IMG/VR virus record: IMGVR_UViG_3300026484_000007
Coordinates: 208,603-272,602 of that record
Reading direction: 5' to 3' (one strand)
Length of the DNA stretch: 64,000 nucleotides
Below the pieces are notes generated by a model. The model did not search any database. It saw only the letters and a program-made list of their open reading frames with translations, and was not told the DNA's origin. The position numbers and the translations under genes were made by a program. Positions 49,308 through 64,000 of the stretch are shown piece by piece; the first letter of the stretch is position 1, and each line of letters begins with the position of its first letter.

Positions 49308-49345
49308 AAAAGTGATCTTTTTAAGATCACTTTTTTTGTCGTTAG
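49308..49345 (+). terminator. terminator on a GATC palindrome, with GTCGTTAG tail
   Basis: AAAAGTGATCTTTTTAAGATCACTTTTTTT. Confidence 0.7.
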
Positions 49346-49546: not shown

Positions 49547-50509
49547 ATGCTAAATGAAATTACTTTATTTATCACAAAAGAATGCAATATGAACTGCGAT
49601 TATTGTACTCAAGAAAATAATAAAGATTCGATAGATGATAATGAATCGCTAGAGTTAACAATCAAAACAATTGAAAGTTTAATCAAAGATAAAAAATTAA
49701 GTTCAAAAACTTCGTGGCATTTTTTTGGAGGAGAACCTACTTTAAAATTCGATAAAATGTTAAAATTATATAAGTATTTAAAAACTCAAGGCTTTAAAAA
49801 TTTTAAATTATTTACTAATGGATTAATAAAAGAATCTTTTTTAGATCACATTCCAAATGATATAATGATTTCGATATCCTACGATGGATTGTCTCAGAAA
49901 AATCGATCTTCAAAAGATCGTGATAAAATTATTAATAATATTAAATATTTAATTACTAAAAATAATTTTGAAAAAATAAATTTCATTTATGATGAATTTT
50001 TATTAAAAAATTATTTTTTTATTAGTGATCTTTTAAAGATCCCTGAGTGGAAAATTACACATAGTTTAAATAGAAATTTTTATTGGTGGACTCCAGAAAG
50101 AATTGAAAAATATTTAACCGAATTTAATGCTTTAGCAGAATATAATTTTTTTGCAAATATATATAGAAAAAATAAAGATATCGAAGATATATATTTTATG
50201 TATTTTCAAAATATATTTAATCAATCAAAAAGATCGATTTTAGGATGTGGGCTTAAAGATTCTCGAATAAGTATATATCCAGATGGATCTATCAAAAATT
50301 GCGGAATTAGATCATTTAATGAAGATGATTATGTTTCTCAAAAAGAGATTGAATCTTTTTGTAAAAATTGTGAAGCTTATAAATTCTGCGATAAAAAATG
50401 CCCTATCGAAATGAAAAAATTTCCAGAGCTTTTTCAATATTCTTTTTGTGAAATAAAAATAAATGAAATTAAAACGCTTGAAAAATATTTTAAAAAGGAA
50501 CTTAAATGA
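49547..50509 (+). CDS. radical SAM protein with SPASM-type C-terminus
   Basis: CNMNCDYC, FFGGEP, TNG, SYDG; CG...C...CKNC..FCDKKCP. Confidence 0.9.
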   Translation: MLNEITLFITKECNMNCDYCTQENNKDSIDDNESLELTIKTIESLIKDKKLSSKTSWHFFGGEPTLKFDKMLKLYKYLKTQGFKNFKLFTNGLIKESFLDHIPNDIMISISYDGLSQKNRSSKDRDKIINNIKYLITKNNFEKINFIYDEFLLKNYFFISDLLKIPEWKITHSLNRNFYWWTPERIEKYLTEFNALAEYNFFANIYRKNKDIEDIYFMYFQNIFNQSKRSILGCGLKDSRISIYPDGSIKNCGIRSFNEDDYVSQKEIESFCKNCEAYKFCDKKCPIEMKKFPELFQYSFCEIKINEIKTLEKYFKKELK

Positions 50510-50916
50510 ATTCAGAACTTATCTTATACAAGTATCTTATTACAGATAAAATACGATCTTTAAAAGATCTTTTTAATCTTAATCCAGATGAAAAATTAAT
50601 TTATGCAATAGATAATTTATTAGAGAGCGCTATTCTTTTTGAATCTTTAAATGATTCAAAACTAGAAAAAATTTCAGAAGAATTATTTAATCTTCATGAA
50701 AGATTATATTCGGAAATAGAAAATATAGTTCATAAAAAATTCCAAAATGAATTATTAAATGAAAAAATTATTAAAGAAAAGCAAGAGTACTACGAAGAGA
50801 TCTTAAAAAGATCACAAACTGATTTAGACAAAAAAGAATATGAAGATATCGAATCTCTCGAATTTCAATTGAAAAAGGATATAAGAAAGGATACAAGAAA
50901 GGATACTAAAAAATGA
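50506..50916 (+). CDS. hypothetical helical protein
   Basis: Translationally coupled to both neighbours. Confidence 0.7.
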   Translation: MNSELILYKYLITDKIRSLKDLFNLNPDEKLIYAIDNLLESAILFESLNDSKLEKISEELFNLHERLYSEIENIVHKKFQNELLNEKIIKEKQEYYEEILKRSQTDLDKKEYEDIESLEFQLKKDIRKDTRKDTKK

Positions 50917-52100
50917 AAGAAGCATCAAAAAATACAATAGAAAACACGGTAGTGATCGATTTAATTACTAATAAAGATTGCAATATGAATTGCAAGTATT
51001 GCTTTGAGCAAGGACATTTTAAGAATACTCAGCTAACCGAAGAAACAATAAATAATATTTTTAATTATATTAAATTATTAAAAGAAAAAGATCCTTCGGT
51101 AAATTTTGAATTTATTTTAATTGGTGGAGAACCGAGCATCGCAAAAAATTTAAATTTATTTTTAGAAAAATTGAAAACCTTAGACGAAAAGGATCTAAAA
51201 AAGATCACTTATATGACAAATGGATTATCAAAAGAAAAAATTGAAAATCATTTAAATCAAATAAATAATCTAATTGATCCTAAAAAGATCGAACTTCAAA
51301 TTTCTTATGATGGAAAAGGTTTTCATGATAAAAATAGATTATTTAAACAACAAGGGAATTTAATTCCTACAAGTGCTATTATAAAAGAGAATATCGATTA
51401 TTTTTATAATTCTGGTAAATGTTATGTTACTATAAAAAGTACAATAACTTATCAAGATTTATTAGATAAAGGATCTTTATTAGATACATTAAACGATTTT
51501 GAAGAATTAAATGAAAAATACCATATATTATATTCCGTTTCAGAAGACAAAACATCGTTCGAAATTCCTGAGAATTTATTTAAAAATAATTTAAATAAAT
51601 TATTAGAATCGTTATTGATCTTAGAAAGATTCGAAAAAGATTTCTTTAAAAAGAAAGGATATTTTTTGACTAAATGGTTTAATGGTGCTAGTTATAGAGC
51701 AGATAATAAAACTTGTGGTATGGGAAATAAAATTATTAGTTTTTCTCCAACGGGAGATGCAATGGCTTGCCATGCAATTGAATACTACGACACTAATGAA
51801 TCTAAAAAAGATCTTTTATACGGAAATATCAATCAAGACTCTTTAGATAGCATTTATGAAAATTTTGAAAGAATTAAAAAAGAAATCAATAATAATAAAT
51901 ACAACCAATGCATAGATTGCAAAACTTTATATTGTAGCAAATGTCCAGCATACACTTTCGAATCTTTAAAAGATCTAAAAAAGATCTATACTGGATCTAA
52001 ATTAAATAATCAAAATTTATGCAACTTTTTTAATTTATTAAGCATAAATATTTATAGAGTTTATAAAGAATTAAATATTCTTGATAAGCTGAAAAAATAA
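50913..52100 (+). CDS. radical SAM/SPASM protein
   Basis: CNMNCKYC, IGGEP, TNG, ISYDG; CGMG...ACH...CIDC...CSKCP...C. Confidence 0.92.
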   Translation: MKEASKNTIENTVVIDLITNKDCNMNCKYCFEQGHFKNTQLTEETINNIFNYIKLLKEKDPSVNFEFILIGGEPSIAKNLNLFLEKLKTLDEKDLKKITYMTNGLSKEKIENHLNQINNLIDPKKIELQISYDGKGFHDKNRLFKQQGNLIPTSAIIKENIDYFYNSGKCYVTIKSTITYQDLLDKGSLLDTLNDFEELNEKYHILYSVSEDKTSFEIPENLFKNNLNKLLESLLILERFEKDFFKKKGYFLTKWFNGASYRADNKTCGMGNKIISFSPTGDAMACHAIEYYDTNESKKDLLYGNINQDSLDSIYENFERIKKEINNNKYNQCIDCKTLYCSKCPAYTFESLKDLKKIYTGSKLNNQNLCNFFNLLSINIYRVYKELNILDKLKK

Positions 52101-52112
52101 AAAGGAGAAATT

Positions 52113-52682
52113 ATGGCTAAGTGTACGTGCGAAGTGATTAGTGCGTGTTCTTCCACTTGGAACTCAAAGTATTGTAGTACAGTTTGTGCATGTAATGACG
52201 TTACATCTTGTTATGACGATTGTAGCGCTTATCTTTCGACATCTCAAGCTAGAGACGATTTTGATAGCACTAAAGAAGATGAGGTTAATACTGCTAGAGA
52301 TAATTTTAAAGGTAAAAAAGTAATTAAAATTTCCGATTTAAAAGCAATTCGAAAATATTTGAATGATATTGCTAAAAGTAAAAAAGATAGTTCTATCACA
52401 ATAGATGAATTAGATAAAAGTAAAGGAGATACCGTTGAAGCAGCTGACGCAGATGATCCAAGAAAAACTAGTTTAAAAATTGGCCTTTTATCTGGAGTAA
52501 ACGCTGCGAGCGCAACATATGATCTTGGAAATATGGGAGAAATTGAATCAGAAGACATCATTGATGGATCGCAATTAAAAACTATAGCCGAATCAATTGT
52601 TGATATAGCTTTATCATGCAGATGTGTTGGTTATTCAGCACAAACTTGTAATGATCAATGTGTTTGCGATTGTAATTATTAA
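52113..52682 (+). CDS. Cys-rich protein, candidate radical-SAM substrate / tail-tip component
   Basis: 8 Cys in the first 37 aa and 6 Cys in the last 21 aa (CVCDCNY end). Confidence 0.6.
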   Translation: MAKCTCEVISACSSTWNSKYCSTVCACNDVTSCYDDCSAYLSTSQARDDFDSTKEDEVNTARDNFKGKKVIKISDLKAIRKYLNDIAKSKKDSSITIDELDKSKGDTVEAADADDPRKTSLKIGLLSGVNAASATYDLGNMGEIESEDIIDGSQLKTIAESIVDIALSCRCVGYSAQTCNDQCVCDCNY

Positions 52683-52729
52683 AAAATTATTAAAATTATT
52701 AAATTTAAATTTATTAAAAAGGAGAAAAT

Positions 52730-53521
52730 ATGTATTATACTTATGTATTTATGAAAAAAGTTTCAGACAATTATTATCAACCGATATCAATAGATAGAGT
52801 TTTTCAAACAGTAGCACCATTCTTAAAATTAGATAATTTTGATTTAGCAGCAAGAATTGATGATCAAGCAATTCGATTAATAGAATATGCGTGGAAGAAT
52901 AAAGAATTTCCTTTAATAAAAGCAGATTATGGAGATATGGTTAGCGTCGACAAAATCATTGTTTTTTCAATGGAAGAATTCAGAAAAGAAATTCTCGCGA
53001 CTAGAAATCCTAATAAATTAAAAGGTAAAACAATTGAAGAGCTATTCGACGATGAAGATTTAAAAAATGAATATCTTTTTGAAAAAAGAAAAGAAGAAAT
53101 TCTTAAAGAGATTCTTAATCAATTCTTCCCAATGTTTAACGTTTGGGATTTAATGAATATGATTAAATATTTAGAATACTGGGGAATTTTATTTAATGAA
53201 GGAATTGTAATTTCTGAAAAAAATAAAGAAGACAAATTCATCGAAATCATTGAAAAAGACGATGATTATCTTTTAGAGATCCTTGAAAAATTCTTAGAAG
53301 CAAAAGAAAGATTTGATAAATTCAATAAAAGTTATTCAGTATATAATAATTTAATTCAAGAGATGGATGAAGTTATGTATTGGGATTTTGATACTTTCGA
53401 AGAAGCTATAGGCACTCTTGATAAAATAAGAAATACATATGTAGCACCAGAAAATTATACTTGGGATAGCGATCTTTATTTATTTAGAAAAATAAGAAAG
53501 GAATATCTTGATAAAAAATAA
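52730..53521 (+). CDS. hypothetical protein
   Basis: 263 aa, AAGGAG RBS. Confidence 0.75.
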   Translation: MYYTYVFMKKVSDNYYQPISIDRVFQTVAPFLKLDNFDLAARIDDQAIRLIEYAWKNKEFPLIKADYGDMVSVDKIIVFSMEEFRKEILATRNPNKLKGKTIEELFDDEDLKNEYLFEKRKEEILKEILNQFFPMFNVWDLMNMIKYLEYWGILFNEGIVISEKNKEDKFIEIIEKDDDYLLEILEKFLEAKERFDKFNKSYSVYNNLIQEMDEVMYWDFDTFEEAIGTLDKIRNTYVAPENYTWDSDLYLFRKIRKEYLDKK

Positions 53522-54377
53522 AAAGGATCGTAAGACTCATTATCATATAATCCTTTCGGATTATTGTGATCGAAGCTGTCCTTATTGTATAAATTCTTCG
53601 GATCAAAATGAGATCATATCAAAAGACGATTACGATTTAATTTTAAAAGAATTAAAAAAAGTTATTACAACAGATGATCTGCAAAAGATCGTTATCGAAT
53701 TTAATGGAGGGGAATTTACTTTAATAAAAAATATTGAATGGTATTTTGAAAGATTATCTTTTATTTTTCAAGATCTATCTAAAAGTGATCTAAAAAAGAT
53801 ACAAATAATACTTACTACGAATTTCATAGCAGAAAATATTATTTATAATAATATTTATGATCACTTGAGATCTTTTTTAGATCATGATCAAATATGGTTT
53901 TGGGTAAGCACGCACTATGATTATACTGAAGAAAATTATATTCAAAAATTAAAAGATTTTTTAAGTTATCATAAAATTAAAAATAATAAAATAAATTACT
54001 GGTTTAACACATTAACCGTTTCGAAAAAACATAATAAATACATTAATGATCTTAGAAAGATCGCAAAAGAAAAATTAAAAGAATTATTTGATTTTCATAA
54101 CATTATTTTTAGTACTTCCAATTTAATTCCAGTTTCTTCGCTGAAAAAGAATATATATTGGTATGACACCAAACCTAAATTATGCTCGGGAAATATTTAT
54201 TTAATTATGTATAAAGGAGTGAGCAATTATTGTAAAGAAGAATTTTTTTCTTTCAATGAGATCTTTAAAAGATACGAACAGGATAATCAAGGTAATCGAA
54301 GTATACTTTGTAAGAAATCCTGCACCGATCAAAAATTTGATGAAGAATTATTTAAGCCTAAATATTTAAAAAAATAA
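53508..54377 (+). CDS. radical SAM protein
   Basis: CDRSCPYC, NGGEF, TTN. Confidence 0.85.
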   Translation: MIKNKKDRKTHYHIILSDYCDRSCPYCINSSDQNEIISKDDYDLILKELKKVITTDDLQKIVIEFNGGEFTLIKNIEWYFERLSFIFQDLSKSDLKKIQIILTTNFIAENIIYNNIYDHLRSFLDHDQIWFWVSTHYDYTEENYIQKLKDFLSYHKIKNNKINYWFNTLTVSKKHNKYINDLRKIAKEKLKELFDFHNIIFSTSNLIPVSSLKKNIYWYDTKPKLCSGNIYLIMYKGVSNYCKEEFFSFNEIFKRYEQDNQGNRSILCKKSCTDQKFDEELFKPKYLKK

Positions 54378-54423
54378 TTAAAATAATTAAAATAATAAAA
54401 ATAATAAAAAGCAAGGGAAATTA

Positions 54424-55191
54424 ATGCAATATGTATATTATAGACTCGACCCTAAATATTTACAAGAAAAATATAAATTAGAAAGTACTCTTCAAGATTT
54501 TTTTTATGGATATCAAACGTTTATAAATCCAGAAAAGAAATACATAATTAAAAACATTCCTCCATTAATCAATCAAGATAAAGACGGCTATTTTTATTTT
54601 TGGAATAAATTTTTATCGTTATTTTCATATGCTAGCGATCATCATCGATTTACTTCGCAAGATATATATATTGATCACGATGTTTTTTTATTTAATTTGC
54701 CTTCCAAAGATACCGAGAATTCCAATAATTTTTATTATACTTATGGGATTTATAATAGCACTAATAAAGTTAGTGCAGCTTGTTTTTCTTTAAAAAAATT
54801 TGAAGATTTTAAATATTATTTTAAAGTTTTTTTTAGTTGTAATGATTATATTAGAAAGAAGCCAGAAAAATTCGAAGAATTTTTATTAACAGAGTGGATA
54901 AAATCATTCATGTCCGACAAAAATTCTGAAAAATTAAAGAAAAAAATCATAAAGTTTTCAGAAAATAAGATAACGTTAGAAAAGCAAAAAACCTTTAAAA
55001 ATTTTATACTACATTATCAGACAAATTTTTTATATCAATTTATTATAAAAAATAAAGATAGTATTAAAATATTTTTAAAAGAAAAATTTTATATTAAAAC
55101 ATTACATGATCTTTTAAAGATCCTTAAAGATCTTGAAAAGATTTATAAGGATTTAAAAAATGAAAAAATATCAAAAAGTTATTTTTTATAA
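54424..55191 (+). CDS. DxD-motif (GT-A-like) protein, paralog of 56135-56761
   Basis: RLDPKY..KY and YIDHD shared with the paralog. Confidence 0.45.
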   Translation: MQYVYYRLDPKYLQEKYKLESTLQDFFYGYQTFINPEKKYIIKNIPPLINQDKDGYFYFWNKFLSLFSYASDHHRFTSQDIYIDHDVFLFNLPSKDTENSNNFYYTYGIYNSTNKVSAACFSLKKFEDFKYYFKVFFSCNDYIRKKPEKFEEFLLTEWIKSFMSDKNSEKLKKKIIKFSENKITLEKQKTFKNFILHYQTNFLYQFIIKNKDSIKIFLKEKFYIKTLHDLLKILKDLEKIYKDLKNEKISKSYFL

Positions 55192-55945
55192 ATTAAATTT
55201 TTTCAATGGTAATCTTTTTTACGCATTTGAATATTTTGAATATCTACGAAAAAATAATTGGAAATTAATAATAGATTTAAATGGATCTTTAAAAGATCCA
55301 TTTAAACTTCCAATAAATAAAAAAATTTTATTTGAAGCGTTTCGAGAAAAATACAGTAAAAAATATCATAATTTATTTACTGAAATTATTTTCTTGAAAC
55401 CTTCAACTTTTTTTGTCGCCGATAAAATCCTTGTATTAGATCAAACCAGCATAAAATATTTAAATAAAACATTCGTGTCTAAAAAGATTATTTATAATTA
55501 TGGAGACGATGAGCGATCTTTAAAAGATCCTTTGAATAATAAAAATAATAAAAATAATAAAAATATTATTACGATAGGAGATAAAGATATCGGTTGTAAA
55601 ATTCAATATCATTATCCATTAAAATTAAATTTTAAAATCTTAAAACGTTTAAATTATAAAAGGATCCAAAAAAGATCCTTTTTGGAAAATAAAACAAAAA
55701 ACATCTATGAAAGAAAAAGAAATGTTAAAGATTTTCATTATACTTTCGATACTTTAATTTATAAAAAAGAAAATTTCTGGGAAAGAGCAAATCGATTAAT
55801 TCCAGAATGTAAATTTTATAATAAAGAAATAATATTTGAAAATAAAGATAAAAGAATTGATAGCGCAAATCTTCGCTATCAATCGTCGTGGAAAGATTAT
55901 AGTTTATATCATAGTGATTTTAAAGATTTCGTGGAAAATCTTTGA
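55160..55945 (+). CDS. glycosyltransferase-like (GT-B?) protein, paralog of 59644-60579
   Basis: GNLFYAFEY, AFREKY and RLIPECKFYNKEI shared with the paralog. Confidence 0.4.
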   Translation: MKKYQKVIFYKLNFFNGNLFYAFEYFEYLRKNNWKLIIDLNGSLKDPFKLPINKKILFEAFREKYSKKYHNLFTEIIFLKPSTFFVADKILVLDQTSIKYLNKTFVSKKIIYNYGDDERSLKDPLNNKNNKNNKNIITIGDKDIGCKIQYHYPLKLNFKILKRLNYKRIQKRSFLENKTKNIYERKRNVKDFHYTFDTLIYKKENFWERANRLIPECKFYNKEIIFENKDKRIDSANLRYQSSWKDYSLYHSDFKDFVENL

Positions 55946-56075
55946 TTTTTAAAGTAGCATCTATTTTCGATACAAGCGATATAAAAGCAGTTCTAAAAAA
56001 TTTAGAACTGCTTTAGAACTCGTATATATCTTTGGGTATCTAATGAAGCGCAACGTTTTAGGATCACGAGTTTTC
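55934..56075. repeat. ~140-bp dispersed palindromic element, copy G (inverted)
   Basis: Reverse complement reads GAAAACTCGTGATCCTAAAACGTTGCGCTTC...GATGCTAC. Confidence 0.85.
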
Positions 56076-56134
56076 AAAGGAAAAAATGAAAGTATAAATA
56101 AATTTATAAATAAATCAAAGTCAAGGAATTATTT

Positions 56135-56761
56135 ATGGACGATTTAAAATTTATTAGAATAGATCCAAAATATATGGAGGATAAATATAAATACGAAGAC
56201 GAAATAACTTATATTATTTTTAAAGATCTTTTTAATATAGAAATAAAATACATTGAACCGATTTATAAAAATTTTTATAAAGAAAGAAAATATATAGATA
56301 AAAAATGGGAAAAGATTTTGACACTGATACATTATTCTTTTTCAGATTCATCTAAAAAATATTATATAGATCATGATATAATTATTAACCCTCGTGTATT
56401 ATCAATGAATAAAATAAACGCGACTTTTGGAGCATATTGCAAGACAGGTAATAAGCTAATGGCTAGTTTTATAGATATGAAAATTATTCAAAATTATAAA
56501 AATATTTTATCTGAAAATATTTTTTTATTAAAAGATATAAATAATGAAGAAATATTATTTAAAGAAATTATTTCAAAATTTAATAAATTTAACAATGTAA
56601 ATTATTTCGATTTACCATTTAATACTATAGAAAATTTAACTTTTCAAATGCATTATAATATTAATTTTATACAACCTTTAATTATAAAAAATAAAAAAAT
56701 AAAAAATAAAAAATATTTAATAAATTTGACAAAAAAACTTAGGAGAATTTATGAAAAATAA
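56135..56761 (+). CDS. DxD-motif protein, paralog of 54424-55191
   Basis: RIDPKYMEDKY, YIDHD. Confidence 0.45.
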   Translation: MDDLKFIRIDPKYMEDKYKYEDEITYIIFKDLFNIEIKYIEPIYKNFYKERKYIDKKWEKILTLIHYSFSDSSKKYYIDHDIIINPRVLSMNKINATFGAYCKTGNKLMASFIDMKIIQNYKNILSENIFLLKDINNEEILFKEIISKFNKFNNVNYFDLPFNTIENLTFQMHYNINFIQPLIIKNKKIKNKKYLINLTKKLRRIYEK

Positions 56762-57845
56762 AAATGATAGATTAAATAAATTTAATAAATTTAATAAATT
56801 TAATAAATTTAATAAATTTAACTCTATAGAAGATCTTTATAATAACTCATGTTTAAAATATGATCATTCGATAATAGATATCAAAAATGAATTTATTAAA
56901 TTAAATAAAATTTTAAAATTAAATGATGAGAGAATTAAAATTGATACGGGATTTGCTTGTAATGCTAAATGTTATTTTTGCTATTATCGATCTCATTTAA
57001 AAGATCCATTTCTTGAATTATCAGAAATTAAAAAACAGATCTTTCATGCAAAACAAATGAATTTTAAACAGGTGGAATTTAGTGGAGGAGAAAGTACTTA
57101 TCATCCTAAATGGTTTGATATGCTTGAAATTGCTCAAAAGTTAAATTTAAAATCCAGTTTGGTTTCAAATGGATTATTATTATCAAACTATGATTTTATT
57201 AAAAAAAGTTATAATTTAGGACTTAAAGAAGTTTTATTTAGTGTTCATGGTTATAAAGAAAATCATGATAAAATGATTGGGGTTGAAGGAGCGTTCGAGA
57301 AGATAATCCAAGCTATAAAATATTCTAAAGAACTGGGTATTCTACCAAGGATAAATATAACAGTCAATCTCATGAATATCAAAGTAATTCCTAATATAGT
57401 AAATTATTTATTGAATATAGGAGTGTATCAATTTAATTTTATAGAAATAAATAATTCTCATGAAGCTTTTAAAACAGCAAGAAAACAGCATTCGGAAATA
57501 TATAATTCTTTTAAAGAGCTTGAACCGATTTTTGATAAAATAATTGAAACTTATAAAAGAGATGATTGTTTAAATATTAGATATTTACCGTATTGTAAAA
57601 TCAATGAAAAGTATCATAAATACATGAAAAATTATATCCATCACTGGTTCGATCATTTTGATTGGAATCCATTGTTTGTGCATAGAACCGATTTTACCAC
57701 GGATAAAATTAAAACTTGGAAAAAAAGAGATTTATCTGTTTTCATAAAACAATTAAAAGCAACAAGAGATTATTGGTATTATAAAGATGAAGATTGCGAA
57801 AGTTGTAAATTTAATGGAGTATGCGATGGATATAAAAAACAATAA
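56751..57845 (+). CDS. radical SAM protein
   Basis: CNAKCYFC, FSGGE, SNG, SVHG; C-terminal CESC...CDG; N-terminal NKF repeats. Confidence 0.92.
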   Translation: MKNKNDRLNKFNKFNKFNKFNKFNSIEDLYNNSCLKYDHSIIDIKNEFIKLNKILKLNDERIKIDTGFACNAKCYFCYYRSHLKDPFLELSEIKKQIFHAKQMNFKQVEFSGGESTYHPKWFDMLEIAQKLNLKSSLVSNGLLLSNYDFIKKSYNLGLKEVLFSVHGYKENHDKMIGVEGAFEKIIQAIKYSKELGILPRINITVNLMNIKVIPNIVNYLLNIGVYQFNFIEINNSHEAFKTARKQHSEIYNSFKELEPIFDKIIETYKRDDCLNIRYLPYCKINEKYHKYMKNYIHHWFDHFDWNPLFVHRTDFTTDKIKTWKKRDLSVFIKQLKATRDYWYYKDEDCESCKFNGVCDGYKKQ

Positions 57846-57865
57846 AAAATTTAAGGATTAATTTT

Positions 57866-58732
57866 ATGCGAAATACAGATGAAATACAAAATTTTTATTT
57901 AAAATCAATGGCTCAGACTCCACTTTACAATACATTATATTTAAATACAGTTTTTACTAAAAAATGCAATTTTAATTGCAGTTATTGTTTCCAAGATAAA
58001 ACAGATGAAATTCTCGATTTGAACGTATTTGAAAATATTTTAAAAAAATTATTAAAATTTAAAAATATTGATAAATATATTTTTTCCATAATGGGAGGGG
58101 AATTATCTTTATTAGATGCTAAGTATATAAATAATATTTTTAATATATTTAATAAAGAATTTAAAGAATTAAAAAAATTAAAAAAAGATATCAAAATAGT
58201 CTTCGTTACTAATTTTTCTACGGATTTTAAAAATATTTATGAATTATATTTTTCAAAAGATTTTCTTAGTAAAAACGTTTTATTAGATTTAGCTATATCT
58301 CATCATCATCAAAATGAAAATCAATTATTCAATAAAGCAATAAATGATTTTATTGATCATAAATTATTGCTTCAAGAAAATATATTATTTACTATCAAGA
58401 CATTTAATATTAATTCATACGAAAAATTTATCAATTTAAAAAACGAATTCTTTAAAAAACATAAAAAATATCAAAATGATTTTTTAATCGAATTCGGTGA
58501 TAAAAATTGGAAAATTCAAAAAAGAATTTTTGCAAAAATAAAAAAATTTACAAGACCAGTAATATGTAATTCTTGGAATTATAATTTAGATTCAAATGGA
58601 AAATTATATCATTTATGTAATTTAAAAGAAATCGATATAAATGAAATAAAACAGATCCCTATTTTTTGCAATAAAAGGTGTAGCAATTATGAAATCGAAC
58701 AAGACACTTATAAAAGACATATACAAAAATAA
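57866..58732 (+). CDS. radical SAM protein
   Basis: CNFNCSYC, MGGELS, TNFS. Confidence 0.88.
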   Translation: MRNTDEIQNFYLKSMAQTPLYNTLYLNTVFTKKCNFNCSYCFQDKTDEILDLNVFENILKKLLKFKNIDKYIFSIMGGELSLLDAKYINNIFNIFNKEFKELKKLKKDIKIVFVTNFSTDFKNIYELYFSKDFLSKNVLLDLAISHHHQNENQLFNKAINDFIDHKLLLQENILFTIKTFNINSYEKFINLKNEFFKKHKKYQNDFLIEFGDKNWKIQKRIFAKIKKFTRPVICNSWNYNLDSNGKLYHLCNLKEIDINEIKQIPIFCNKRCSNYEIEQDTYKRHIQK

Positions 58733-59657
58733 ATTGATAAGATTTTCTGATCATTTAGCTCAGCCAATAAAACCCAAAATAAATATCAGCACCGTTGTTA
58801 CATATCAATGTTCTCTTAATTGTCCGTATTGTAATCAAAAAATAGATAGAAATAATATTTTAAAATCAAAAAAAGATTTTAAATTAATTAATTTAATTCT
58901 TTATGAAAAAGTATTACAAAAAATGTTTGATGAATTTTTAAGAAATAAAAATATCAATTTAAACGATTTTAATGTTGCTTTTAATATTTTAGGAGGAGAA
59001 TTATCAGAATTGCCTTTAAATTATAATATCGAATTAATTAACATTCATCAGAGAATTATTAAAAAATATAATCTAAACGTCGAAATAACATGGTTATCAA
59101 ATTTTACTCAAAATAATAATTATTTTAAAAAGATATTCGATGAGTTAAATAATTTTAATCATAAAGAAAATGATAAAATATATAATTTTGAATTATTATT
59201 TAGCATTCATGGGGAATATTTAAAAAATCATTCAAAAGAAAAAATAAAAGATAAATTTATTGATTTATTTAAATACAAGAATATTAACGAACATACATGT
59301 ATTAAAATATTTGGAAAACATCTCAGCAAATACTTTATAAATGAACTTCATAAAAATCATAATTTTAATAATTCTTTTGAAATTGGAGATTTAAATTTTC
59401 TATCTTACTCAAGACAATTTAAAAATAATTATGATTTAATTAGACCGGTTAAATGTTATAATTTTAATTATGATATAACGCCTGACTTATCAATTATTAA
59501 TCAATGTAATAAAGATCCCGAAGGGAAAACTATAAGAATGAATTATTTTAATTTTAAATGCAATGATATTAAAAAATGTAATAAAAAATGCCCGATAGGG
59601 GATTTTGAATTCAATGTTTATAAAAAGGTTATGAAAAAGGATAATGAAAATGAATAA
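58689..59657 (+). CDS. radical SAM protein (paralog of preceding gene)
   Basis: CSLNCPYC, LGGELS, SNFT, RPVKC. Confidence 0.88.
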   Translation: MKSNKTLIKDIYKNKLIRFSDHLAQPIKPKINISTVVTYQCSLNCPYCNQKIDRNNILKSKKDFKLINLILYEKVLQKMFDEFLRNKNINLNDFNVAFNILGGELSELPLNYNIELINIHQRIIKKYNLNVEITWLSNFTQNNNYFKKIFDELNNFNHKENDKIYNFELLFSIHGEYLKNHSKEKIKDKFIDLFKYKNINEHTCIKIFGKHLSKYFINELHKNHNFNNSFEIGDLNFLSYSRQFKNNYDLIRPVKCYNFNYDITPDLSIINQCNKDPEGKTIRMNYFNFKCNDIKKCNKKCPIGDFEFNVYKKVMKKDNENE

Positions 59658-60579
59658 AATTAATTTGAGCAAAAATGATAAAATATTTAATTTTATTGAT
59701 AATAAAAATACTATTTATTTAACATATTCCCCCGCTAAAGATGAATACGAAAGAATTTGTGGACATACTTTCGAAGTAATGGATTATTATCTTTTATTAA
59801 AAGATAATGGTTACAATGCAAAAATATTGATTTTTGATAAATTTAAAAATAAAAATAAATTATTTAACGCATGGGAAGATAAATACGTTTTGGATGATTA
59901 TCCAAATTATAAAAAAGATGTAATATTTAAAAATATTAATTTTAATTCTATAAATAGATTATATATTCCTGGATATTTAATTATTACTTCTGGAATTGAT
60001 ATTTTTTGGGACCAAATATTTAAAACATTGACTAAAAAAATAATTTCTTTTCAATGCGAAGAATTTGATTATTCTGAGTATTTAAAATTTAAAAATTTTT
60101 ATTTGCTTAGAGATGAAAGAATTTATCAAAATAAAAATTCTTCAGAAAAGACATTTAATTATCTTAAAAAAATATATTTTAAAAGATATAAAAAAATAAA
60201 TAATATAAAAACCAAAAAAACACTTGTATATGTAAATTCAAAATTAAAAGATTTATCAGAGGATCAAATACGATTTTTCATTAAAAACTACAAAATCGAA
60301 AATATATTATTTATATCTGGAACTATACTTACCAAAGAACAAGAGCAAAAATATTTAAAATATGGTGAATTAAAATATGCTCCAGTTGAAAATTTATTTG
60401 ATCAATTCGATAATTATTTAGTAACTCCTAATACAAGGAACTTCGATTGTAGTCCAAGATTCGTAGCGGAATGTAAATTTTATAATAAAGAAATATTCGT
60501 TCCTTTTAATCCAAAAGAAGATTTAGGTTTTTATTGGAGATGGTATGATATAAAAATTGATCGAAAAATTTTATTTTAA
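59644..60579 (+). CDS. glycosyltransferase-like protein, paralog of 55160-55945
   Basis: GHTFEVMDY, AWEDKY, PRFVAECKFYNKEI. Confidence 0.4.
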   Translation: MKMNKINLSKNDKIFNFIDNKNTIYLTYSPAKDEYERICGHTFEVMDYYLLLKDNGYNAKILIFDKFKNKNKLFNAWEDKYVLDDYPNYKKDVIFKNINFNSINRLYIPGYLIITSGIDIFWDQIFKTLTKKIISFQCEEFDYSEYLKFKNFYLLRDERIYQNKNSSEKTFNYLKKIYFKRYKKINNIKTKKTLVYVNSKLKDLSEDQIRFFIKNYKIENILFISGTILTKEQEQKYLKYGELKYAPVENLFDQFDNYLVTPNTRNFDCSPRFVAECKFYNKEIFVPFNPKEDLGFYWRWYDIKIDRKILF

Positions 60580-60617
60580 AAATAATTTTTTTTACTAGAA
60601 TTATCAAAAGGAATAAT

Positions 60618-61622
60618 ATGGATAAAATTTTAACTTTAGAAAATATTAAAGCATTAGAAATCGGTTTAAATAATACATGCAATCTTGCTTGCCCAATGTG
60701 CACGAGACAAGAATTGAAATCAAAAGTAAAAAATTTATTAAATAACTGTGAACTCAATTTAGATATTCTGAAAAAAAGGATAAATGAATTAAATATTGAA
60801 AGAATAGAGATCGTTGGTTCAATAGGAGAACCATTATTTTATTCTTCTATTTTTAATTTAATTGAATTTTTAAATGAAAAGAATATAAGAATAATTATTA
60901 GTACTAATGGTTCTATTAAAAATTTTAATTTTGAAAAGCTTGGAAGATTATTAAAAGAAAATGATATAATTAGATTTCCTATGGATGGAACTTTTGAAAC
61001 TCATTCAATTTATAGAAAAAATAGTGACTTAAACTTAGTATTAAATAATATAAAAAAATTAAAAAAAGAAACTAAAGCTACAATAATTCTTCAAACTATT
61101 ATATTTAAATATAATGAAAATCAATTAGATGAAATTTTTAAAATATTTAAAGAATCAGAAGCTGATTTATTTGAACTTACTCATACAGGGTATTCCGAAT
61201 ATTTAGATGATCAAGTTAGACCAGTTGATGAATTATTAAAATTATATAAAAAAAACGATAAGATCGCCAATGAGAAAAAAAATATTATAAACTGCGAAGC
61301 GATAAAAGATAAAAAAATTTATCTTAATTGTTTTGGATATTTTTTACCATGCGAAAATCTTGATGAATATGTATTTTTGCATAAAGATGATATTCATTCT
61401 TGCTCGGAAGCTAATCTTAATAAATTATTTTATCAAAATAATATGCAAGAAATAATTAAAGAAATTAATTCTATAATAAAAAATAAACAGAATTTCGTAG
61501 AATGCCATCAATCTTGCGGATTATTTAATAATATAATTAGAAAAAAATTTGATGTTTTCCAATTTACAAAAAACGGTGAAAAATATAAATTAAAAAAATA
61601 TAGATTATTATATAATGATTAA
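60618..61622 (+). CDS. radical SAM protein (twitch/SPASM-like tail)
   Basis: CNLACPMC, GSIGEP, STNG, MDG, PC..C...C. Confidence 0.9.
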   Translation: MDKILTLENIKALEIGLNNTCNLACPMCTRQELKSKVKNLLNNCELNLDILKKRINELNIERIEIVGSIGEPLFYSSIFNLIEFLNEKNIRIIISTNGSIKNFNFEKLGRLLKENDIIRFPMDGTFETHSIYRKNSDLNLVLNNIKKLKKETKATIILQTIIFKYNENQLDEIFKIFKESEADLFELTHTGYSEYLDDQVRPVDELLKLYKKNDKIANEKKNIINCEAIKDKKIYLNCFGYFLPCENLDEYVFLHKDDIHSCSEANLNKLFYQNNMQEIIKEINSIIKNKQNFVECHQSCGLFNNIIRKKFDVFQFTKNGEKYKLKKYRLLYND

Positions 61623-61690
61623 TAAATAATTATAAATAATTATAAATAATTATAAATAATTATAAATAATTATAAATAATTATAAATAAT
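61621..61690. repeat. tandem repeat (TATAAATAAT)x7
   Basis: Direct reading. Confidence 0.95.
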
Positions 61691-61704
61691 TAATGGGAGA
61701 TATT

Positions 61705-62787
61705 ATGGTAATTAATGAATTTGGTAAACTTAAAGAAGTAATAGTTGGTCGCGAATTAAAAGTATCTAAACGCGCTCTAGATTTATCTTTTAAAGTTCTT
61801 TATAGTAAAATTATGAAAGATAAAGAATGGGATGAATTTGAAGAATATAAAATTTCTCAAAAATTTATCGATGAAAGAAATGAAGATTTAGATAATTTTG
61901 CTAAACTTTTAGAAAATATGGGGGTTAATGTTATTCGTCCAGAAAAACAAACCGATATGAAAAAAATAAAAACCCCTTATTTTGAATCTTTAGATCTAAC
62001 ATCCTCTAATGTAAGAGATTTGACTTTAGTGTATAAAGATGCTATTTTTGAATTTCCCCCTATTTATAGAGGAAGATATTTTGAACATCATTATCTTTAT
62101 AATTATTTTAAAAAGAAAATGTATAAAGATAATTATTTATGGATTAAAGCACCATTAAATAGATTAATGGATGATAGTATCGATTATCTTGATTGGGATG
62201 AAAAAAGAAATTTTGAAAATTTTAATATAGATAAATATGATATAGCAATTGATGCTGCTCAATATTTAAAAATTAATGATATTTTATTATGCAATTATAG
62301 TCTTTATAATCATAAATTAGGAACTAAATGGTTTGAATTAAATTTTAAAAGATTATTTCCTGATACAAAAATAATTTATACTAAAGCATTAATTGATAAT
62401 CATTTAGATGGAAATATTATACCTTTAAGAGAAGGTGTTTTGCTTATAAATGATTATAATTTATATAAACCTATAGAATATTATTTACCTAATGAATTTA
62501 AAAAATGGAAATTAATAAAAATTAATAATGATAGAATGTCTTCTGATCAAATAAAAAAATATTTAGATTATTATACAAGTATTCCTCAAATAGCTTCCTT
62601 GAGAGGAATGGATATTAACGTTCTTAGTTATGATAGAAATACTGTATTCGTGAATAAAGATAGCATGAATGTTATTAAAGCTTTGGAAAAAGAAAAGTTC
62701 GATGTTATTCCAGTACAACTTAGGCATTCTGAGATATTTGGTGGAGGTTTACATTGCGTAACATTAGATGTCAATCGTGAAGAGTAA
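61705..62787 (+). CDS. amidinotransferase (glycine/inosamine-phosphate amidinotransferase family)
   Basis: NEFGKLKEVIVGR, VRD, DAA, HLD, GGGLHCVTLD (Asp-His-Cys triad). GGGAGA RBS favours ATG 61705. Confidence 0.92.
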   Translation: MVINEFGKLKEVIVGRELKVSKRALDLSFKVLYSKIMKDKEWDEFEEYKISQKFIDERNEDLDNFAKLLENMGVNVIRPEKQTDMKKIKTPYFESLDLTSSNVRDLTLVYKDAIFEFPPIYRGRYFEHHYLYNYFKKKMYKDNYLWIKAPLNRLMDDSIDYLDWDEKRNFENFNIDKYDIAIDAAQYLKINDILLCNYSLYNHKLGTKWFELNFKRLFPDTKIIYTKALIDNHLDGNIIPLREGVLLINDYNLYKPIEYYLPNEFKKWKLIKINNDRMSSDQIKKYLDYYTSIPQIASLRGMDINVLSYDRNTVFVNKDSMNVIKALEKEKFDVIPVQLRHSEIFGGGLHCVTLDVNREE

Positions 62788-62855
62788 AAGAGTAAAAAGA
62801 GTAAAGAAAAGCAAATATAAAAAAATATAAAAAAAATAAAAATAAAAGGATTATT

Positions 62856-63671
62856 ATGCTAAATATAGAAAAAAAATTAAATGATTTAAAAGAAAGTTAT
62901 TATGATAAAATAATTTTAAAAAATTCTGAAATCTTTAAAAAAAATAATTTAAATCCTCATGATATAAAGATAACCAATAAAGTTATTTATATTCCTTTTA
63001 CCTACTGCGAATTTTTTCCAGTATATGAAATTAAAAACACGAAAGAAAAATTTGTTTTAAAATACGAATTTGAAGAATATAAAGAAATTTTAAAACAAGA
63101 ACTTGAAATATACATAAAGATTTTTGAAAAATTTAAAAACGATTTAAAAGAATCAAATATTAATATAAAAACGGAATTTTATAATATTGATTATTATAAA
63201 GATTATTTAGAAAATTATAAAATTTTTAAAAAAAATGATAAAGATTTATTATATATTCCATCGATAAAAAAAGATGAAAAAATAAAATATCTTAAAATTT
63301 TTAATTTTAAAAATCTAAATTTATTATATAAAGAATATGTTGGAACGAATTTTATTTATTTAGATTGGTACGATCTTGATCAAAAATTTACTTTAAAAAC
63401 TATTAATTTATTTGATCTTCTTAGTTTTGAATTTATTTATCCTCTTAAAAAATTAAATATTGATTTATTTTTATTTTATTACTATCTAGTAATTATTAGA
63501 AAATTCAATATATTTGAAGATAAAAATTTATCAAGTGAAAAATTTTGTAAAAGAATAATAGAATTTGAAAATTTTTTTACCGATATTAATGATTTTATAT
63601 TCAAAACACCTCAATTCAAAATATTTTTATCAAAAATAAAAAAATTTAAAGAGGAAAACGATGATTTATAA
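62856..63671 (+). CDS. hypothetical protein
   Basis: 271 aa with RBS. Confidence 0.7.
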   Translation: MLNIEKKLNDLKESYYDKIILKNSEIFKKNNLNPHDIKITNKVIYIPFTYCEFFPVYEIKNTKEKFVLKYEFEEYKEILKQELEIYIKIFEKFKNDLKESNINIKTEFYNIDYYKDYLENYKIFKKNDKDLLYIPSIKKDEKIKYLKIFNFKNLNLLYKEYVGTNFIYLDWYDLDQKFTLKTINLFDLLSFEFIYPLKKLNIDLFLFYYYLVIIRKFNIFEDKNLSSEKFCKRIIEFENFFTDINDFIFKTPQFKIFLSKIKKFKEENDDL

Positions 63672-64000
63672 TATTAAATTTGAAGATATAAAAACATTTG
63701 AAATAAATTTAGTCAATGCATGTAATCTTAAATGTCCTCTTTGTCTTAGACAATCTAATGATTTTAAAAACAGCTTATATAATAATAAAAGAAATGAAAT
63801 AGATTTTAATGATTTAATAACTTTTTTAGATAAACTTCCTAATTTAAAAAGAGCGATTCTGATGGGAGCTACATCAGAACCAACTCTTTATTCCAAGTTT
63901 TTTGATTTTATTAAATACTTAAAATCAAGAGATATTGTTCTGAGAATTAGTACTAATGGTAGTACTCATAATCCTAAATGGTGGACTGAGTTAGGTCAAT
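63661..64000 (+). CDS. radical SAM protein, truncated by window end
   Basis: Translated by hand: MIYNIKFEDIKTFEINLVNACNLKCPLCLRQ...MGATSEP...STNGS. Confidence 0.88.
   Translation, partial: MIYNIKFEDIKTFEINLVNACNLKCPLCLRQSNDFKNSLYNNKRNEIDFNDLITFLDKLPNLKRAILMGATSEPTLYSKFFDFIKYLKSRDIVLRISTNGSTHNPKWWTELGQ

Follow-up and report, generated by a model that had tools for sequence, protein, structure and literature searches.

We found that the region at positions 53508–64000 of a 64,000-nucleotide stretch of IMG/VR virus record IMGVR_UViG_3300026484_000007 (positions 208,603 to 272,602 of the record; the window) belongs to a roughly 20-kb mobile gene cassette, shared by unrelated large phages and a few bacteria, that packs eight radical-SAM (rSAM) enzymes, four predicted sugar transferases and a predicted amidino-transferring enzyme next to a cysteine-repeat, fibre-like protein. 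Our best reading, which remains tentative, is that the cassette matures and glycosylates this fibre-like protein and carries an accessory amino/guanidino-sugar branch, the chemistry being inferred rather than demonstrated. The initial annotation had described a biosynthetic island with six rSAMs, two duplicated transferase-like pairs and an amidinotransferase with an intact Asp-His-Cys triad, and this observation was confirmed, although its coordinates cut a larger unit. Its interpretation, a pathway decorating virion proteins or DNA with an amidinated sugar-like group, was only partly supported: the transferase folds, the amidinotransferase and neighbouring sugar genes agree with it, whereas DNA as the target is poorly supported, and a specific candidate protein target exists that had not been connected with the island.

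The cassette runs from window position 49547 to 64000 and continues, across the joint of the record, at the record start to about base 4642, giving about 19–20 kb in total, of which the region represents the downstream two-thirds. All of its ORFs lie on the + strand and are tightly packed or overlapping, and a terminator-like hairpin (49308–49334, +; 12-bp stem plus T run, from a consensus scan only) separates the preceding large gene from the first island gene and is the likely upstream boundary of the transcription unit. The GC content is 0.217 compared with 0.289 outside, and the low-GC block continues over the joint (0.239 against 0.305), where the cassette adds a short DegT aminotransferase that keeps the PLP-lysine motif, a deacetylase and an SDR dehydratase/epimerase.

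All six rSAM ORFs of the initial annotation (53508, 56751, 57866, 58689, 60618 and 63661) carry the CX3CX2C motif for the [4Fe-4S] cluster within the first 77 residues (at residues 20, 70, 34, 41, 21 and 21, respectively) and a GGE or GEP/SEP-type motif downstream. The motif was found in 8 of 17 island ORFs and in 0 of 43 ORFs in window 1–49400, and the whole 272-kb record has only one further Pfam rSAM hit. Pfam Radical_SAM (PF04055) scores were above the gathering cut-off for 56751 (75.3 bits), 60618 (43.4), 57866 (31.1) and 63661 (30.5), whereas 53508 scored 23.2 against a cut-off of 29.5 and 58689 gave neither a Pfam nor an NCBIfam hit. The enzyme at 53508–54377 (+) has CDRSCPYC at residues 20–27 and GGE, and its C-terminal cysteines suggest an auxiliary cluster. 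The enzyme at 56751–57845 (+) has a C-terminal CxxCxxxxxC (CESCKFNGVC) and has as its nearest solved structure BlsE cytosylglucuronate decarboxylase (5e-13). The enzyme at 57866–58732 (+) carries CNFNCSYC and GGE; that at 58689–59657 (+) carries CSLNCPYC and GGE and is a full-length paralog of 57866 (29% over 309 aa, E 6e-13). The enzyme at 60618–61622 (+) is 38% identical to CP220 gp083 and gp084, and 63661–64000 (+) is the N-terminal 113 aa of a 60618-type enzyme cut by the record end, the C-terminal 202 aa of which lie at the record start (bases 2–610), with about 24 codons missing in between.

Two more rSAMs and the likely substrate gene lie at 49547–53521. The best family matches of the rSAM enzyme at 49547–50509 (+) are the PapB ranthipeptide and CcpM Cys-rich-peptide maturases, well below their cut-offs, and the enzyme at 50913–52100 (+) is the only one with a SPASM profile hit (PF13186, 23.8 bits), its best NCBIfam match being PapB. 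The scores of these two enzymes against PapB were 66–72 bits (72 for 50913) compared with a cut-off of 340, and all rSAM subfamily assignments were far below family cut-offs; apart from 50913 and the 56751 pattern, the others have 3–5 C-terminal Cys but no SPASM profile hit. Between these two rSAMs lies a small Cys-free ORF without an assigned function (50506–50916, +), and a short ORF sits at the same place in three related loci (L008, L012 and L015).

We next evaluated the paralog pairs, for which the absence of a transferase fold, together with the absence of a detected modification, had been set beforehand as a refuting outcome. ORFs 54424 (54424–55191, +) and 56135 (56135–56761, +) are related by BLASTP (E 7e-8, 29% over 140 aa), share YIDHD and are predicted to be GT-A-like glycosyltransferases. 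The DxD-type residues D84-H85-D86 of 54424 are invariant in nine sequences, as are E151, E152 and H197; its medium-confidence model (pLDDT 72) has as its top Foldseek match the PBCV-1 glycosyltransferase A64R (PDB 2p6w; E 4.6e-3, probability 0.96, TM about 0.3), and structural alignment (VIA-align) gave Z 8.0–8.8 over 175–195 aa, near the background level stated for the method, with every top hit a GT-A enzyme and with agreeing leads from the Atlas. A64R represents viral structural-protein glycosylation and, as predicted here, a virus-encoded cytoplasmic GT-A enzyme, although the match is weak. For the second pair, 55160 (55160–55945, +) and 59644 (59644–60579, +), BLASTP found only the 18-aa ECKFYNKEI block (E 0.006), but a profile of the 59644 family aligned 199 columns of 55160 (hhalign probability 95.6, E 1e-8). 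The AF2 model of 59644 (pLDDT 90.1) has a compact GT-B, GT4-like fold, matching PimA (2gej) with Z 15.6 and rmsd 3.3 over 258 aa, and all 50 listed entries have the GT-B fold. No Pfam (including Glycos_transf_1), NCBIfam or named PHROG hit was obtained, and the EX7E motif of GT4-like enzymes is not retained: the ECKFYNKEI block lies in the C-terminal domain, where only E274 is invariant and the second Glu is not conserved. The pairing of a short (55160-type) and a long (59644-type) GT-B copy recurs in related loci. Both paralog pairs are real and have transferase folds by prediction, the GT-A assignment being the less secure.

The ORF at 61693–62787 (+) is a predicted L-arginine-dependent amidinotransferase of the StrB1/HsvA/AGAT type. 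It matched solved amidinotransferases over residues 5–362 (HsvA 5wpi, 8e-26; StrB1 1bwd, 1e-24; AGAT 1jdw, 2e-20; SxtG, 2e-18) at an identity of only about 25% and in a different gene context, with no Pfam PF02274 hit at E ≤ 0.01. Asp187, His237 and Cys355 align to the StrB1 triad and, together with D109, R128, D239 and H354, are invariant wherever the sequence is present in the 14 family members, one copy being cut off at its locus end before H354/C355. The triad and its accessory Asp, Arg and His residues are identical to those of the StrB1, HsvA and AGAT enzymes. A tandem repeat of 10 copies of a 10-bp unit (TAAATAATTA; 61591–61692) spans the end of the 60618 ORF and the spacer before the amidinotransferase. 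For the following ORF (62856–63671, +), the only lead was a weak kinase-like (APH/choline-kinase) signal below the reliable range.

To evaluate the distribution of the cassette, we retrieved related loci with the GT-B profile alone, which returned 58 loci: 53 viral contigs and 5 genomes, including a Peredibacter chromosome. Of these, 57 contain rSAM-motif ORFs (median 7), 51 a 56751-type rSAM, the most widely conserved rSAM of the cassette, 46 a 49547-type, 40 a 50913-type and 43 a homolog of the conserved protein without an assigned function at 52730–53521 (+; family F4). Most show the same order, namely a SPASM rSAM, the cysteine-repeat protein, the 52730-like gene, the GT-B pair and the rSAM array, and nearly the same order is seen in the complete Peredibacter sp. 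chromosome (L015), in L012 and in the phage-sized contigs L006, L010 and L011. One or two PapB-like SPASM rSAMs together with these genes form the conserved core, whereas the amidinotransferase, GT-A glycosyltransferases, DegT, SDR and deacetylase form a variable accessory set. Within this set the amidinotransferase co-occurs with a GT-A family (F3) in 9 of 10 loci (Fisher 9e-6) and with DegT in 7 of 10 (9e-4), DegT with F3 in 11 of 14 and SDR with the deacetylase in 11 of 16, in statistics that ignore relatedness among loci; this fits an amidinated amino-sugar.

The candidate substrate is the cysteine-repeat protein at 52113–52682 (+), which has 189 aa and 14 Cys and ends ...CNDQCVCDCNY, directly downstream, as in most loci, of the SPASM enzyme. 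Of the 43 ORFs directly before a 52730-like gene, 17 end in a Cys-rich tail and most of the rest carry, or are, a Peptidase_S74 extension (22.5–40.9 bits, cut-off 22); variants end ...CxCNY or run straight on as ...CNY|SDxRLKxNI into this self-cleaving intramolecular chaperone, and one carries a glycine-rich domain (Pfam Gly_rich_2). Peptidase_S74 is the C-terminal chaperone of tail-fibre and endosialidase proteins and usually starts with SDxRLK. The window's copy, in contrast, stops exactly at CNY, the predicted cleavage point, and no S74 domain was found anywhere in the record; the preceding part is a Cys-repeat and not a recognizable beta-helix. With our models the cysteine-repeat family was detected in only about 23–30 of the 58 loci.

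Comparison with known systems revealed that the link to the CP220/CPt10 module of Campylobacter group II phages, described in 2010 as interchangeable and of unknown function (Timms et al. 2010, PMC2853527), is real. Like that module, the cassette clusters five or more rSAM genes with one amidinotransferase and has orthologous members: the amidinotransferase is 52% identical to CP220 gp086, the 60618/63661-type rSAMs are 38–51% identical to gp080, gp083 and gp084, and a GT-B homolog (gp077) lies nearby. The present phage, however, is not a Campylobacter group II phage, as its portal matches only PBS1/AR9-type jumbo phages, so the module is shared horizontally. The window adds the PapB-like SPASM rSAMs, the cysteine-repeat protein, the 52730-like gene and a private GT-A pair, and lacks CP220's GT-A family F3 and the PAP2 membrane phosphatase that follows the CP220 cluster. 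In ranthipeptide and sactipeptide systems (PapB/PapA, CteB) and in QhpD/QhpC protein cross-linking, as here, a SPASM rSAM is encoded next to a gene whose C-terminus has short periodic Cys motifs. The cassette does not qualify as a PapB-type system, since the PapB scores are far below cut-off and the candidate substrate is a 150–430 aa protein, often fused to an S74 chaperone, rather than a short leader-core peptide; moreover, it has no peptidase or exporter and carries 7–11 rSAMs plus glycosyltransferases.

In the model that we tentatively favour, the cysteine-repeat protein would be a trimeric, fibre-like protein matured in the cytoplasm, where SPASM-type rSAMs would install cross-links in the (CxCNxx)n repeats and the glycosyltransferases would attach sugars. 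The SDR enzyme would make a keto-deoxy sugar nucleotide, DegT would turn it into an amino sugar, and the amidinotransferase would move the amidino group of L-arginine onto that amine through a Cys355 thioester-like intermediate to give a guanidino sugar, which BlsE-like rSAMs such as 56751 may tailor further. No island protein has a membrane-span-like segment, so the pathway is cytoplasmic and soluble. The analysis establishes the enzyme families and folds (the GT-A fold with the reservation above), the catalytic motifs, the gene order and its conservation, and the CNY|S74 junction, whereas every substrate, including the arginine donor and the amine acceptor, the catalytic activities, the order of steps and the presence of the modified protein in the virion are inferred. 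Furthermore, CP220, CPt10 and the cyanophage S-SCSM2R have the amidinotransferase/rSAM/GT set but no detectable cysteine-repeat protein, so that at least the sugar branch can work with another acceptor, and the cassette also occurs in bacterial contigs where no virion need exist.

The same absence in CP220-type clusters speaks for a small-molecule pathway, which we consider unlikely, making a diffusible guanidino-glycoside, aminocyclitol or nucleoside-type metabolite (streptomycin- or blasticidin-like logic) used against competitors or to manipulate the host, with the cysteine-repeat protein belonging to a separate, merely adjacent module. The amidinotransferase is closest to StrB1 and HsvA, the nearest solved rSAM for 56751 and 60618 is BlsE of blasticidin S biosynthesis, DegT/StrS-type aminotransferase, SDR and deacetylase genes are present, and the cyanophage paper reads its three homologs as antibiotic-synthesis genes (PMC12801897). 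On the other hand, the island has no exporter, resistance gene or membrane protein, the GT-B pair and the 56751-type rSAM stay next to the cysteine-repeat/52730-like genes in most of the 58 loci, and seven to eleven rSAMs is far more than any known glycoside pathway uses. Remodelling of host LPS, capsule or flagellin sugars during infection, for example to block superinfection or release progeny, appears less likely still. DegT and SDR give their best NCBIfam matches to LegC/PseC, LegB and ArnA-type surface-sugar enzymes (all below cut-off), the CP220 cluster is followed by the PAP2 phosphatase and the cassette occurs in bacterial chromosomes, but the island lacks an initiating phosphoglycosyl transferase, flippase, polymerase or any membrane-span-like protein, and this reading does not explain the rSAM array or the conserved cysteine-repeat/S74 gene.

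Hypermodification of phage DNA bases by the glycosyltransferases and amidinotransferase to evade restriction is the least likely alternative. The GT-B model also aligns to the T4 DNA alpha-glucosyltransferase (Z 12.4), rSAM enzymes take part in thymidine hypermodification in other phages (PMC8989533) and Campylobacter phages have heavily modified DNA; however, the T4 match is no better than many other GT-B enzymes, and a PF00303 search of the 272-kb record, which is 97% complete, found no thymidylate-synthase/hydroxymethylase homolog to supply a hydroxymethyl base as in T4-type glucosylation, while control genomes gave matches. In addition, the full G replacement by a 7-deazaguanine in CP220 is attributed to a separate Que/DpdA3 pathway, and the cassette occurs in bacterial chromosomes and keeps a protein-substrate-like gene.

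Clusters rich in rSAMs with an amidinotransferase have been noted in Campylobacter phages since 2010 without any function, and homologous genes in a cyanophage were recently called antibiotic synthesis genes. Our analysis shows that these genes belong to a much wider cassette, found in at least 53 viral contigs and 5 bacterial genomes and shared between phage lineages with unrelated portals, and it names a concrete, testable substrate candidate tied to the tail-fibre S74 chaperone. A more far-reaching possibility, which we regard as unlikely but not excluded, is that the cassette defines an undescribed class of protein maturation, in which a trimeric, fibre-like protein ending in (CxCNxx)n-CNY repeats, released from or made without an S74 chaperone, is cross-linked by an array of rSAM enzymes and decorated with an amino- or guanidino-sugar; in effect, this would be RiPP-style chemistry applied to a phage fibre or adhesin and carried as a mobile module between unrelated jumbo phages and predatory bacteria. 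If the model that we favour holds, it would add a new kind of virion-protein chemistry, a new set of rSAM reactions and possibly a natural guanidino-sugar.

The part of the window from 53508 to 64000 holds 12 tightly packed or overlapping ORFs, all on the + strand and named here by their start coordinates. Six of them (53508, 56751, 57866, 58689, 60618 and 63661) carry a CX3CX2C motif near the N-terminus, and all six have a GGE/GEP-type motif downstream. Four pass the Pfam Radical_SAM cut-off, ORF 53508 is just below it, and ORF 58689 has no profile hit but is a full-length paralog of 57866 (E=6e-13). As a control for chance occurrence, the motif was counted across the window, revealing it in 8 of 17 ORFs of the whole island and in 0 of 43 ORFs of the first 49 kb. 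The whole 272,602-bp virus record contains only one other Pfam radical SAM (rSAM) hit, at 158465-158767 on the minus strand and outside the window, which could be QueE-like. The first paralog pair, 54424/56135, was confirmed by BLASTP (E=7e-8), whereas the second, 55160/59644, was confirmed only at the profile level (hhalign probability 95.6, E=1e-8 over 199 columns). ORF 61693 aligns over its full length to the solved amidinotransferases HsvA, StrB1, AGAT and SxtG (E=8e-26 to 2e-18); Asp187, His237 and Cys355, together with D109, R128, D239 and H354, are invariant wherever the sequence is present in 14 relatives. Thus, the six rSAM genes, the two paralog pairs and the amidinotransferase with an intact Asp-His-Cys triad described in the initial annotation were all confirmed.

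Tandem repeats were found within this array. Ten copies of a 10-bp unit (TAAATAATTA) at 61591-61692 span the stop of the 60618 rSAM gene and the spacer before the amidinotransferase gene. In addition, in-frame 9-bp tandem repeats at 56767-56821 and 55535-55565 encode (NKF)n at the N-terminus of the 56751 rSAM and (NNK)n inside the short GT-B 55160, respectively, and are possible length-variable segments.

To evaluate whether the paralog pairs are transferase-like, as the initial annotation had claimed and had set as a point to be checked by fold prediction, we modelled one member of each. For the 59644 family, 28 sequences were collected and gave a confident model (pLDDT 90.1), which matches only GT-B glycosyltransferases, with PimA at Z=15.6 over 258 aa followed by TarM, BshA, PglA and T4 AGT at Z=12-14. 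For the 54424/56135 family, a word-index protein search with 54424 returned only the protein itself, whereas an exhaustive profile search found eight proteins, 54424 among them; their alignment has invariant D84-H85-D86, E151-E152 and H197. The resulting model (pLDDT 72) matches only GT-A enzymes, namely PBCV-1 A64R, glycogenin, LgtC, GT6 enzymes and the LH3 glycosyltransferase domain, although these matches are modest (Foldseek E=4.6e-3; Z=8.0-8.8); leads from the Atlas agree. The transferase-like assignment is therefore well supported for the 55160/59644 pair and moderately for the 54424/56135 pair. Searches of Pfam, NCBIfam and PHROGs gave nothing useful for 54424, 55160, 56135, 58689, 62856, 52113, 52730 or 50506, nor for the neighbouring unknown ORFs of related loci. 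A PDB profile search with the family of 52730-like proteins found no match, and a PDB search with 62856 found nothing meaningful; for the latter, the Atlas gave only sub-threshold kinase-like leads (0.86-0.87), to which we attach no evidential weight.

The region is part of a larger unit. Upstream lie two more rSAM genes, at 49547 and 50913, the second of which has a SPASM domain; both match PapB/CcpM-type peptide maturases best, but far below cut-off. They are followed by a 189-aa protein with 14 cysteines (52113) and a conserved unknown protein (52730), and a terminator-like hairpin at 49308-49334 precedes all of these genes. A promoter scan was uninformative in this AT-rich DNA, with 149 sites found against 137 expected. 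Downstream, the window ends at the end of the record, inside the 63661 gene, and the first bases of the record (L002:2-610, L002 being the locus at the record start) encode the C-terminal 202 aa of that rSAM type, with about 24 codons missing by comparison with CP220 gp084. The interruption of one rSAM gene by the two record ends fits a circularly permuted genome whose assembly broke there, while IMG/VR lists the record as linear and 97% complete. Across this joint come a short DegT-like aminotransferase that keeps the PLP-lysine motif, a polysaccharide-deacetylase-like protein, a 401-aa unknown ORF for which a PDB search found nothing meaningful, and an SDR dehydratase/epimerase. Just after the island, a 443-aa ORF (L002:4763-6094) matches only a short part of family B DNA polymerase (31 bits), and the polymerase may be split or very divergent. 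The unit is also distinct in composition, with a GC content of 0.217 in the island against 0.289 in the rest of the window, and 0.239 in the first 4.6 kb of the record against 0.305 beyond. No island protein has a membrane-span-like segment, and no exporter or resistance gene was found in the island, making synthesis of a diffusible guanidino-glycoside an unlikely reading; likewise, the absence from the island of an initiating transferase, flippase or polymerase makes remodelling of the host-surface glycan more doubtful still.

Next, we examined the relatives of the region. A megablast comparison with 50,697 phage records found no match, and a search for related loci with the single amidinotransferase sequence found nothing in viral contigs. 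At the protein level, the amidinotransferase is 52% identical to CP220 gp086 and the 60618-type rSAMs are 38-51% identical to CP220 gp080, gp083 and gp084, which belong to a module described in 2010 as interchangeable and of unknown function (PMC2853527). We first considered the phage to be a divergent Campylobacter group II phage; this was rejected because its portal (39095-41458) matches only PBS1/AR9, phiR1-37 and S6-type jumbo phages and no Campylobacter phage. The module is therefore shared between unrelated phages. The jumbo phages matched by the portal are uracil-DNA phages, and the record has no thymidylate-synthase homolog; the phage may therefore belong to that group rather than to the Campylobacter phages. 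In the T4-like cyanophage Synechococcus phage S-SCSM2R, the same short DegT form (36% identical), an rSAM, several glycosyltransferases and an amidinotransferase lie side by side (L005:7281-10948, L005 being the locus from this phage), and its paper reports a second amidinotransferase (ORF266) in purified virions (PMC12801897).

The GT-B profile retrieved a wider family of 58 loci, comprising 53 IMG/VR contigs and 5 GTDB genomes, the latter including the complete Peredibacter sp. HCB2-198 chromosome and a Bdellovibrionales MAG in which the locus is flanked by two-component genes. Of the 58 loci, 57 contain rSAM-motif ORFs (median 7 per ~20 kb), 51 a 56751-type rSAM, 46 a 49547-type rSAM, 43 a 52730-like gene, 40 a 50913-type SPASM rSAM, 16 the GT-A family F3, 16 an SDR, 14 a DegT, 13 a deacetylase and 10 an amidinotransferase. 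The gene order in the Peredibacter locus (L015) and in the related locus L012 almost mirrors that of the window, and the pairing of a short and a long GT-B recurs in many loci. The amidinotransferase co-occurs with GT-A family F3 in 9 of 10 loci and with DegT in 7 of 10, counts that are not corrected for relatedness among the loci. The presence of the cassette in bacterial chromosomes, the lack of a hydroxymethylase homolog in the record and the assignment of the 7-deazaguanine replacement of CP220 to another pathway together disfavour hypermodification of DNA, which we regard as the least likely of the alternatives.

The ORF just before the 52730-like gene comes in two forms. One ends in periodic repeats such as CICNSDCSCNNVCSCHNDCGCNY or (CTCNCNY)n, whereas the other has the same repeats followed directly by SDxRLKxNI, a continuation that is a Peptidase_S74 domain (22.5-40.9 bits against a cut-off of 22). 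An example of an S74-bearing homolog is L047:7843-8553. S74 is the intramolecular chaperone of endosialidases and tail fibres, which drives trimer folding and then cuts itself off in front of that serine. The mature end of the long forms would therefore be ...CNY, exactly where the cysteine-repeat protein of the window (52113) ends (...CVCDCNY). The record has no S74 domain of its own. In three loci, one of them in the complete Peredibacter chromosome (L015:7712-8586, L012:7634-8601 and L024:7691-8502), the S74 chaperone is split at the same point: the Cys-repeat ORF ends a few residues after SDxRLKxxI, and a separate 93-99 aa ORF in another frame carries the rest of the domain, which could be a real two-gene arrangement, a recoding site or a recurrent assembly error. 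Extreme versions of the Cys-repeat tail, with up to 17 Cys in the last 42 residues as (CTCNCNY)n, were found in three further loci (L037:5593-6873, L068:4967-5485 and L063:7984-8502), the one in L037 being fused to a glycine-rich domain (Pfam Gly_rich_2). The family has no Pfam or NCBIfam model and appears rare, with 7 clusters in the word-index search.

The initial annotation had inferred a pathway decorating virion proteins or DNA with an amidinated sugar-like group, an interpretation that our data support only in part. The island is a form of the known but unexplained CP220-type module, and the wider cassette and its candidate substrate appear to be undescribed; within the literature searched, we found no paper linking rSAM arrays to an S74-bearing or cysteine-repeat protein. 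All of the chemistry is inferred, and a complex prediction of the 50913 rSAM with the 52113 protein returned a score of 0.00 and is not evidence either way. Moreover, CP220, CPt10 and S-SCSM2R carry the amidinotransferase/rSAM/GT set, while a search of these three phages with the cysteine-repeat profile found no match; this is the main weakness of the reading we favour, as the sugar branch must then be able to serve another acceptor. Taken together, the most economical reading, which we hold tentatively and at somewhat less than even confidence, is a cytoplasmic maturation cassette for the fibre-like cysteine-repeat protein (52113), in which SPASM-type rSAMs would act on the Cys repeats, GT-B and GT-A enzymes would add sugars, and an optional branch comprising the SDR, DegT, amidinotransferase, deacetylase and perhaps the BlsE-like rSAMs would supply an amino or guanidino sugar.
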